A DNA stretch of 64,000 nucleotides, taken from Saccostrea echinata. Lineage: Eukaryota. The translations under genes were made by a program, and so were the position numbers. The stretch covers positions 7,006,001 through 7,070,000 of the forward strand of contig NW_026889803.1 of NCBI RefSeq assembly GCF_033153115.1, read 5' to 3'. A model generated the notes under the pieces. It did no database searches. It was given only the letters and a program-made list of their open reading frames with translations, and was not told where the DNA came from. Shown here piece by piece: positions 45,101-48,100 of the stretch; position 1 is the first letter of the stretch; the number at the start of each line of letters is the position of its first letter.

Positions 45101-48100
45101 CATTAAAAGAAATTGTTGCAGAGTCAGGTATTCATTTCTATGCTCCCCTTGGAAAAAGAGCCTGTCGTTCGGTCGGTAGAGTGTTGTCCGCTCTATATCT
45201 TAAGAATTACCCTTTGCTTGACTGACATCAAACTTGGGACACTGGTACCCTCTGAAGAGTAGATGACCTATCAATTTTGAGGTCACAAGGATCAAACAGA
45301 ACATAGGAAAATATAGATCGCACAATATCTTGAGAACCCTTCACTAGACACACATCAAACTTGATACACTAGTTTCCATTGAGAAGTAGAGGACCACTTA
45401 GATATTGAGGTCACTAGATTAAAGGTCAAACTGGACTTAAGAATATATTGACAGTTCAATAAATTGAGAACCCTTTGCTTGACATATATCAACCTTGGTA
45501 CACGTTTTTCTTAAGGAGAACATGACCCCAGCCCTATTGCTTATGAGGTCACAAGATCAAGGGTCAACTGAACATAGTAAAATATTGACCACTCGATATC
45601 AATAGTAAAATATTGACCACTCCATATCTTGTTAACCCTTTGCTTGGCAGACATCAAAGTTAGAAACACTGGTTTCCATTGAGGAGTAGATGAACACTTT
45701 AGATTTTGAGATACTAGGACAAAAATCAACGGACAAACTGGACAGAGCAATATATTGATCATTCATGATCAATATCTTGAGAACTCTTTGCTTGACACAA
45801 ATTAAACTTATTACAGTGGTTCTCCTTAAGCAGTAGATGACCCTATTGTTTGCTTGCCGAGGTCACAATGGCCAAAAGTTAAACTGAACACAGGAAGATA
45901 TTGACCACTCCATATGTGGGGAACCCTTTGCTTGACAGACATCTAACTTGGAAAACTGGTCTCCCCTAAGGAGTAGCTAGCTACTGTAGATTTTGAGGTC
46001 ACAAGGTCAGAAGTCAAACTTCTCTAAATATAGGGAGATATTGTTTTCTCAATATTTTGAAAACGCTTTGCTTGGAAGACATTAAAATTTTTACATTAGT
46101 TTCCCTTAGTGAGATGACCCTTATTGATTTTGAGGTTACAAGATCTAAGGTCAAAGGTCACATATAGGAAGACATTGACCACTCAATATTTTAGAACACT
46201 TTGCTTGACAGACATCAAACTTGGTACATTGGTTCTTTTTCAAGAGACGACCCCTTTTGATTTTGCGGTCACAGGCGTAAGGGTCAAACAACATAGACAA
46301 AAGACATGGGAAGATATTGTCAGCTCAGTTTTTGGAGAACTCAACCATTTGCTTTACATACATCAATTTTTATACTCTGGTACCATTTAAATAGTATATT
46401 ATCTCTTAATTATACTGAGGTCTGATAGACATCAAACTTAGTAGTTTGTTTGCTTCTGACTTGAAGATTGCCATTTATTTTCATATAATTATACACATTC
46501 TAAATTAATTGTTCCGTTTTTCAAATTGCCAGGAGGGGGGCTTATATGTTTCTCAAACATTTCTTGTTTATTTCTGAAGTGAGGAATGCAATAAATAATA
46601 TTATTATTTGATTGAATAATTTCCATCTCTCTGATTGGCTGAGATCCAACAATGTTAGAAAAATACTACGTTATATTGACCTGCACGTGACCTTCCAGGT
46701 CAATATAAGGAATTATTTCCAGGTCAATATAAGAAATTATTTAATCTACATTGGACCAAAAATAGATAATTATATAATAAAACAGTTATTGCTGTTTTTT
46801 GAGGTCAATACGATGATTTAGACACCTTCGAAGTACAATATTCACCTCGCCCTTCGAGCTCGGTGAATATTGTACTCCTCGGATGTCTAAATCATCGTAT
46901 TGACCTAAAAAAAAACCCAGCAATAATTGTATAATATATGATAAAACATCACAACTATTCTTAAATGCAGAGGTCACACAGAAAATCTGAGAATACTGAC
47001 AGATTTAGAATTAAGACACGGGTGGCCAGCATCTGATGACGTCATGGTTTTCATTGATGACAGTGCGAGTCAACGTGGTTATGGAACAGGTTAATGTCTG
47101 TCAATATCTTCAATATTTTTGCACAAATAAGCTCTTAATAAAAGGATTTTTAAGGTTAAGTTGGTAGAGCTAATGCCTTAATATGTTTAATTTCTACGCC
47201 GAACTTCACGAATCCACTCAACTTTAATACACTGTAGTTTGTGCAGTGAGCATCTCTCGTCTTTTGGATGAGAGACATTTCTGCAGTTTTTGAATGTACT
47301 TTAAGTTTGTGTTTTTACTTGTTTTTAACAACTTCTTTTGCAGCAAAAGTTTTGTCCAATTTTGATAATCCCCGTTTGTATAAGATGGCAAACGTGTTCA
47401 TGCTTGCACATCCGTATGGATTGGCAAGAGTAATGAGCAGTTACTATTGGCCGAAGACAATGGTCGACGGTAGGGACGTTTACTCTTGGATGGGCCCACC
47501 AGCAGATTCTAATATGACCACACTGGGGGTCTTCTACAACAACAACATAAATTGTCAAAATGGATGGGTAAGTAGAAAGTCTTAGATTGAAAAAAAAAAC
47601 AACATTTTTTTACTTTAAGATTATCTGACACCAACACTGTGCTGAATCGTCAGTTATGAGTAATTTCTGTAAGTTCTTTCCAGATCTGTGAACATCGTTG
47701 GAGACCAATAAAGAACATGGTAGGTTTCCGAAATACCGTGGGTCGTGCCAGAATATCGAACTGGTGGAGTAACAATCAAAGACAGTTTGCCTTCGCCAGA
47801 CAAGGCAGGGGATTCGTCGTCATGAACGCCGGAAATTCCGAGTTATCTGTCAAGTTGCTCACTGCTTTACCAAGTGGAACATATTGTGACATCATATCCG
47901 GTGATTTTGCGAATGATAAGTGTACTGGAAAGATAGTAACAGTAAATAACCTTGGACAAGCCAATTTCATTATACATTCTCGAGAACAGGAACCGATGAT
48001 TGCAATACATGTTGGTAAGAATAATCTACAATAAGTAAATTACCGGATATAAGACAAAATTTTAATTAATCTATTTACTTAGAAATATTGTTCGAAGAAA

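Follow-up and report, generated by a model that had tools for sequence, protein, structure and literature searches.

An alpha-amylase-like gene with a remodelled region IV in the rock oyster Saccostrea echinata, conserved in two oyster genera

The amylase-like gene and its region IV

The window analysed here is a 64,000-nucleotide stretch of the Saccostrea echinata genome (contig NW_026889803.1, positions 7,006,001 to 7,070,000), and all coordinates below are positions within it unless another contig is named. On its plus strand this rock oyster DNA carries an eight-exon alpha-amylase-like gene whose internal exon 5 (46971-47089) encodes region IV. There, the residues Asn-His-Asp (NHD; N298-H299-D300) are replaced by Asp-Ser-Ala (DSA), encoded at 47059-47067. 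The RefSeq product of the gene is a 523-aa protein, P0166, labelled "alpha-amylase-like [Saccostrea echinata]".

Read from 46972, exon 5 gives 39 residues, and the 13 encoded by 47047-47085 contain the DSA triplet. A phmmer comparison with the Protein Data Bank (PDB) aligned this stretch to VFVDNHDNQRGHG of the solved animal amylase 8or6/8orp, and VFVDNHDNQRGHG is what canonical animal amylases read at this position. We also took a census of the motif in a set of 284 proteins, of which 146 are homologues of full length (440-620 aa). Of these 146, NHD is present in 131 and other motifs in 10, while the five proteins with DSA all belong to this oyster clade. A survey of individual residues was based on a 69-row alignment, A2, in which H299 occurs in 64 of the 69 rows and D300 in 65; Ser-Ala stands in these columns in P0166, P0151 and P0152. 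An earlier reading of the DNA letters without database searches (the sequence-only reading) had reported the exchange of NHD for DSA. The exon translation, the alignment to the PDB amylase and the census bear that out, and DSA at region IV is not a chance resemblance.

Passages of PMC8467227 and PMC5347038 on GH13 catalysis assign the roles of nucleophile to D197, acid/base to E233 and transition-state stabiliser to D300, and the first of these sources, in the part concerned, gives the region IV Asn as a chloride ligand. Functional animal alpha-amylases have His-Asp in region IV, where the S. echinata protein has Ser-Ala. Its chloride triad is broken, with R195 and R337 kept and N298 changed to Asp. 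Residues retained in A2 are W58, Y62, Q63, D96, H101, Y151, L162, L165, R195, D197, A198, K200, H201, E233, I235 and R337. The nucleophile segment GFRIDAAKH is intact, and the D197 column is Asp in 69 of 69 rows. The calcium site is also complete (N100, R158, D167 and H201), and four disulfide pairs and the NH of region I are retained. The sequence-only reading was thus right that the nucleophile segment, region I, the calcium-site Asp and the cysteines are kept.

The recorded substitutions in the S. echinata protein are N298D, H299S, D300A, H305Y, E240L and W59F. Acid/base E233 is present, but it is directly followed by a two-residue Asp-Leu insertion (ILHEDLVID, against the canonical IYQE--VID). 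This insertion, together with E240L, H305Y and W59F, had escaped the sequence-only reading. The Gly-rich loop after region IV is shorter than in canonical amylases. At columns that are at least 90% conserved, the S. echinata protein and its DSA orthologue from Magallana gigas share 15 derived residues, 8 of which fall at 238-240 and 298-309. Conservation was scored here on 62 canonical rows, leaving out the three DSA rows and four proteins with an odd region IV (P0006, P0033, P0098 and P0196).

The gene model was checked exon by exon, without joining exons, and the whole-codon translations of exons 2-8 are each a substring of P0166. Exons 2-7 are flanked by AG and GT, exon 8 has an AG acceptor and ends in a stop codon, and the frame is open throughout. 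Exon 2 (41207-41343) encodes the mature N-terminus, beta1 and the first Cys, and aligns to the amylase N-terminus. Exon 3 (42133-42284) carries the segment with W58, F59 and Y62, in which a run of 19 residues is identical in Magallana gigas. Exon 4 (44187-44708) encodes regions I (NH), II (the nucleophile) and III (with the insertion after the acid/base Glu) along with calcium ligands. Beyond exon 5, exon 6 (47344-47567) encodes the shortened Gly-rich loop, beta8 and R337 in ARVMSSY, and exon 7 (47684-48014) encodes the all-beta domain C (Pfam PF02806, E 5.7e-16). Exon 8 (48175-48254) holds the C-terminal tail FPGILGKRR and the stop codon.

There are two candidates for exon 1, both on the plus strand. 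The longer one, 39143-39206 (64 nt), begins with ATG and would encode 21 codons plus one base, with a signal-peptide-like hydrophobic stretch and a phase-1 donor (CAG/GTAATT). It is predicted from the genomic DNA, since the transcript contigs described below were compared only at 44150-48300, and its hydrophobic stretch aligns weakly to the signal peptide of the M. gigas orthologue (local tblastn, E 0.31). The RefSeq exon, 41097-41103, has 7 nt that encode Met-Ala plus one base, followed by GT; it starts just five residues before the conserved GLWS and falls short of a normal signal peptide. The first exon of the RefSeq annotation may be wrong, with 39143-39206 in its place. The sequence-only reading had proposed a frame of 542 codons with a signal peptide. 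That total holds if 39143-39206 is the first exon, and the 523-aa product starting at 41097-41103 stands beside it as the competing model.

Both expected Pfam families were found on P0166 above their gathering scores (PF00128, 26.9 bits against a cut-off of 22; PF02806, 55.9 bits against 21.2). When single-exon translations were searched, the domain-C exon alone scored. The exon pieces of the catalytic domain are too short for Pfam, so we used phmmer against the PDB, where exon 4 matched solved animal amylases with an E-value of 1.9e-37 in an alignment with a two-residue gap. An AlphaFold2 model of P0166 built on A2 had a mean predicted local distance difference test (pLDDT) score of 90.7 and a predicted template modelling (pTM) score of 0.91. 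Confidence was low at residues 241-245 after the insertion (below 50), at residues 311-320 in the loop past region IV, and in the tail at 506-523 (pLDDT <50). The sequence-only reading had suggested superposing a model on pancreatic amylase; Foldseek comparison with the human and pig enzymes gave template modelling (TM) scores of 0.91/0.96 and a root-mean-square deviation of 1.6 Å over about 499 columns. In the model, the three-domain amylase fold, a (beta/alpha)8 barrel with domains B and C, is retained. The gene is an oyster-lineage paralogue of the animal-type (GH13_15/24) digestive alpha-amylase.

Transcription, orthologues and selection

A run search returned five sequencing runs in two studies, and contigs from four of them (X1-X4) were compared with the window over 44150-48300. 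In all four runs, which cover both studies and are guessed to be RNA, spliced contigs skip the introns exactly. The joint 44708>46971 is present in contigs of X1, X2 and X3, 47089>47344 in contigs of X1-X4, 47567>47684 in contigs of X1-X3, and 48014>48175 in contigs of X1 and X3; all four introns are GT..AG. Four exons are covered by a single contig in X2 (1026 nt) and again in X3 (763 nt). The splice sites that the sequence-only reading had judged intact are therefore not only present but, at the four joints from exon 4 to exon 8, in use. Contig pieces covering 46971-47086 in X1, X2 and X3 had no other letters and no gaps, and no exonic indel was listed.

Contig depth in the introns is about zero except at one repeat. 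That repeat lies in intron 4 at 46513-46929, where the summed depth is very high (bins up to 199), with many variants and loose ends. Within it, at about 46800-46910, a long inverted repeat is followed by a poly-A run. It has the look of an element akin to a miniature inverted-repeat transposable element that is transcribed or widespread.

Exon 5 has a single match in the 923-Mb genome (1 match of 1 candidate), and exon 4 has one 100% copy among seven amylase-like genome matches. Since both exons are single-copy at 100%, a retrocopy does not account for the splicing seen in the contigs. The seven loci are the exon-5 gene itself (on contig C54), one gene on C28, three on C57 and a tandem pair on C23. 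The C28 gene (G000:C28:9276087-9276614) is canonical, with NHD, the same exon layout and 48-50% identity. The three neighbouring C57 genes (loci L005-L007 and L012-L014) are intron-poor and canonical as well, with NHD, GFR[I/V]DA[A/S]KH and open reading frames of 384-412 aa. In the C23 pair (10751617-10752135 and 10759322-10759837; L003, L004, L010 and L011) the nucleophile is lost, the motifs being GFRIADAKY/FIDDQT in one gene and GFRISNAKY/FIDDQV in the other. A 374-aa protein, P0036, is identical to the second C23 gene over the exon-4 region compared.

An alternative exon supplying NHD was sought in two ways. Four canonical amylases compared by tblastn with 38000-50000 placed region IV at exon 5 alone, and among 13 NHD tripeptides found by a six-frame pattern search of the whole window, none had amylase context around it. 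A short segment of intron 3 (43502-43540) matches a canonical Pinctada amylase at 9 of 11 residues (E 0.095). With stop codons on either side, it is probably a chance match, possibly a relic.

A profile-free scan of the exon-4 reading frame against 1.84 billion representative sequences returned two fragments with 75% identity. The 90% cluster of the first contains the orthologues, XP_034337342 ("alpha-amylase [Magallana gigas]") and XP_052715816 (C. angulata), each of 536 aa. Both have the same DSA in region IV and the same insertion in region III as S. echinata, so the loss of NHD is shared by bivalve orthologues, a point that the sequence-only reading had left to such a search. With the M. 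gigas protein as query, P0166 was 71% identical and all the rest were canonical amylases that did not exceed 53%, among the 120 matches listed of 5125. Further DSA-type proteins were sought by comparing residues 285-335 of P0166 with a set of 5.8 billion proteins. Of three candidates P0166 alone passed, a blank that says little because the M. gigas cluster is represented in that set by a 189-aa fragment. Saccostrea and Crassostrea are dated in the pertinent part of PMC6289776 as having split about 77 million years ago (Ma).

Selection was judged from contig differences and, between genera, from protein-level tests as well. Comparison of the window with the contigs listed 14 within-exon differences (3 further ones exist), of which 9 are synonymous and 5 nonsynonymous. 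Over 273 synonymous and 993 nonsynonymous sites this is a ratio of about 0.15 (binomial P 7e-4), with the synonymous count resting on at most three samples and some contigs having a depth below 5. Between the S. echinata and M. gigas proteins, which are identical at 374 of 537 columns, differences affect 15 of 168 highly conserved columns (9%), 40 of 127 at intermediate conservation and 80 of 201 among the variable columns (40%; chi-square 45.6, P 1e-10).

The longest identical runs between the two proteins are region III with its insertion (22 aa), region II (21), the W58/Y62 segment (19), beta2 (17), the calcium/domain-B segment (16) and region IV with DSA (14). Remodelled regions III and IV are thus first and sixth on this scale. 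Because all six runs are cleft-forming segments, the remodelled cleft is the part that selection protects most. The gene is maintained, transcribed and under purifying selection. This agrees with the sequence-only reading, which had proposed a maintained gene, and the spliced contigs of four runs, the DSA of M. gigas and C. angulata, the 9 of 14 synonymous differences and the avoidance of conserved columns all speak for it. As a homologue of an enzyme that has lost a key catalytic residue while its gene stays intact, expressed and under purifying selection, the protein is a candidate pseudoenzyme.

The DSA pair has diverged more than the canonical pair, with identities of 64.5 against 80.5% in exon 6 and 71.2 against 87.4% in exon 7. 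In a 32-row tree the DSA clade, supported at 100/100, branches within the pteriomorph bivalve amylases, and its stem is long, at 1.28 changes per column. Identity falls to 33-40%, measured in sliding segments, over the last 25 residues. The Gly and basic end of the tail is conserved, reading FPGILGKRR in S. echinata and FPGIIGRR in M. gigas. Canonical bivalve amylases have a shorter basic tail, GAKKGS..KKVTT.

What the remodelled cleft may do

We lean, a little beyond even chances, towards a secreted protein that would dock alpha-glucan in its cleft and hydrolyse it poorly or not at all. The aromatic platform of W58, Y62 and Y151 is kept, along with H101, R195, D197 and E233, and should allow an alpha-1,4-glucan chain to dock in the cleft. 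With H299 replaced by Ser and D300 by Ala, O2/O3 of the subsite -1 sugar would no longer be gripped and the transition state no longer stabilised. An Asp at 298, placed between R195 and R337, should exclude chloride. It is this combination, the loss of H299 and D300 and an Asp298 expected to exclude chloride, that makes us favour glucan docking with little or no hydrolysis. Any hydrolysis would be expected to be orders of magnitude slower than that of the canonical enzyme, if it occurs at all. Kinetic work on human pancreatic amylase reportedly found a kcat loss of about 10^3-fold in D300 mutants. The protein might then serve as a secreted, lectin-like alpha-glucan-binding protein of the digestive or secretory pathway.

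Secretion is suggested by the N-terminus of the orthologue, the disulfides and the calcium site, and the loss of activity, the glucan binding and the physiological role are likewise inferred. The sequence-only reading had offered several roles for a non-hydrolytic protein. Conservation of the cleft fits its suggestion of glucan binding better than that of a pure matrix or mucus component.

Several observations weigh against a non-hydrolytic glucan binder. The nucleophile and the acid/base are still present after about 77 My, and the C23 amylase pair has lost its nucleophile whereas the exon-5 gene has kept its own, a hint that the chemistry may still matter. Some of the lost function could be restored by Asp298 and by the Asp inserted next to E233, both of them new. 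AlphaFold2 confidence is lowest at the remodelled loops themselves, residues 241-245 and 311-320. The signal peptide of S. echinata depends on which of the two candidate first exons is used, and the runs are guessed to be RNA. In BmaN1, a GH13 protein, the third Asp is a His, yet starch is still hydrolysed, at 8.4 U/mg according to a section of PMC5347038. Given an active BmaN1, a kept nucleophile and acid/base, and the high conservation of regions III and IV, residual or altered catalysis is possible.

Such catalysis is the core of the first alternative, that the site has been remodelled but the protein still works as a glycosidase or transglycosidase. D197 and E233 would do the chemistry, Asp298 would fill the chloride pocket, and the inserted Asp or another residue would partly replace D300. 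The result would be a chloride-independent enzyme with an altered range of substrates or products. We regard this as a real but distinctly less probable course. D197, E233, R195, H101 and Y62 are all present, and the rank of regions III and IV among the identical runs suggests selection for a precise new geometry. Published precedents point the same way, both the activity described for an aberrant GH13 triad in part of PMC5347038 and the sandfly study, whose authors, in the passage concerned (PMC8063059), left activity open for non-canonical amylases. However, H299 and D300 are both gone, changes also affect H305, E240 and the mobile loop, and the replacement in BmaN1 is a polar His where the oyster protein has Ala. 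The same genome also has complete canonical amylase genes (the C28 gene and the three on C57), and a fifth amylase is not evidently needed. A bolder proposal is that the gene encodes a re-engineered, chloride-independent GH13_15/24 enzyme with a new carboxylate layout (Asp298 between R195 and R337, and an Asp beside the acid/base Glu), probably with a new specificity, fixed for about 77 My in oysters; we think this rather unlikely.

It is improbable, in our view, that the fold has been kept for a role independent of the cleft. In such a role the protein might form part of a structure or of the mucus or style, associate with the active amylase, or act as a carrier that undergoes processing at the G-(K)RR tail. 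The long stem branch would suit such a change of role, and so would the tail FPGI[L/I]G(K)RR, which is conserved in both genera and whose exon junction is used. Conservation is nevertheless strongest on the cleft-forming segments and weaker on the surface and the tail.

Finally, a decaying pseudogene, an assembly or sequencing error, or an alternative NHD exon would be very surprising, given the open frame, AG/GT at the junctions, spliced contigs that match the genome exactly at exon 5, the same DSA in another genus, an excess of synonymous differences (ratio about 0.15), substitutions skewed away from conserved columns, and region IV at exon 5 alone within 38000-50000; sequence error, an NHD exon and lack of expression, which the sequence-only reading had itself named as grounds for doubt, all fall away with it.

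Comparison with known proteins helps to place the favoured glucan-binding protein. Canonical bivalve alpha-amylases (M. gigas K1QDY3, our P0174, and the S. echinata C28 gene) have the same exon structure, fold, calcium site, disulfides, nucleophile and acid/base at 48-53% identity, and the clade of pteriomorph/mollusc amylases includes that of the DSA proteins. The DSA gene differs from them in each of the following: they have NHD and a short basic tail, they lack the insertion after E233, and they keep E240 and H305. The C23 tandem pair is likewise intact, amylase-derived and broken in its triad, with Asp at 298, but unlike the DSA gene it has also lost the nucleophile and has no insertion. 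In an exon-4 tree (45 rows) the C23 pair and the DSA clade each have a long stem of their own, although a single origin was not rejected (approximately unbiased test, p 0.25).

Outside the molluscs, sandfly LlAamyB1, B4 and B6 are animal-type GH13 paralogues without canonical catalytic residues, to which the text of PMC8063059, as far as it bears on them, assigns no function. In the same portion of that paper, B4 and B6 are described as missing both the nucleophile and the acid/base; the oyster gene has lost the third residue and its neighbours only. The BmaN1 group, in the corresponding part of PMC5347038, resembles the oyster gene in keeping the nucleophile Asp and acid/base Glu while the transition-state-stabilising Asp is replaced. 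It differs in having His and not Ala, in being bacterial and of another GH13 subfamily, and in its demonstrated activity. The SLC3 heavy chains (rBAT and 4F2hc/CD98hc), as characterised in a passage of PMC8063059, are GH13-related, lack catalytic residues and have a non-enzymatic role. They are membrane-anchored, related to alpha-glucosidases and remote from animal amylases, and are likened to the oyster protein here by description only.

Maintained enzyme-derived proteins with broken triads are thus already known, including among animal amylases, as the sandfly portion of PMC8063059 indicates. What we did not find in print is this pattern: DSA in region IV beside an intact nucleophile and acid/base, extra residues behind the catalytic Glu, and a tail whose G-(K)RR end is conserved. 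Literature searches returned no published description of the gene or its accessions, although supplementary expression or proteome tables may list it, and PMC7003070 contains no occurrence of "Crassostrea" or "inactive".

Loss of chemistry with retention of the binding site is a common route from enzymes to new functions. Animal-type alpha-amylases are usually treated and annotated as active, and the RefSeq labels here read "alpha-amylase" and "alpha-amylase-like". The oyster gene is a natural example, conserved in two genera, of an amylase relative that retains D197 and E233 but has exchanged D300, the adjacent His and the Asn that binds chloride, and it offers a direct test of the limits of GH13 cleft remodelling. 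Studies of oyster nutrition, growth markers or gene families should leave it out of the digestive amylase capacity. If the C23 pair is considered as well, oysters seem to possess a few amylase-derived proteins of non-canonical type.

Other amylase-like sequences and flanking DNA

Downstream of the C57 gene L007 (815-477, minus strand), a Ser/Thr-rich stretch is followed by sequence like the C-terminal extension of a 725-aa amylase, P0004. A Haliotis amylase-like clade (P0006, P0165 and P0196) has TQD or NQD in region IV, that is, Gln for H299 with D300 kept, on a stem of 0.30.

The frames that neighbour the amylase-like gene in the window offer no functional clue to it. On the minus strand, the open frame at 35111-35461 is one that we take to be a Nudix-box-like exon, and 49940-50524 has a 195-aa open frame with a YMDD-type motif, probably a fragment of a retroelement bearing a reverse transcriptase. 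On the plus strand, 58603-58977 is presumably a glutathione-peroxidase-like exon, and the frame at 62999-63439 has, to our eye, the look of a cytochrome P450 N-terminus. Between these, a C/T-rich low-complexity tract at 51800-52540 is open in three plus-strand frames (Ser/Leu/Pro-rich), and the GC skew is -0.31 in the 52001-54000 bin.

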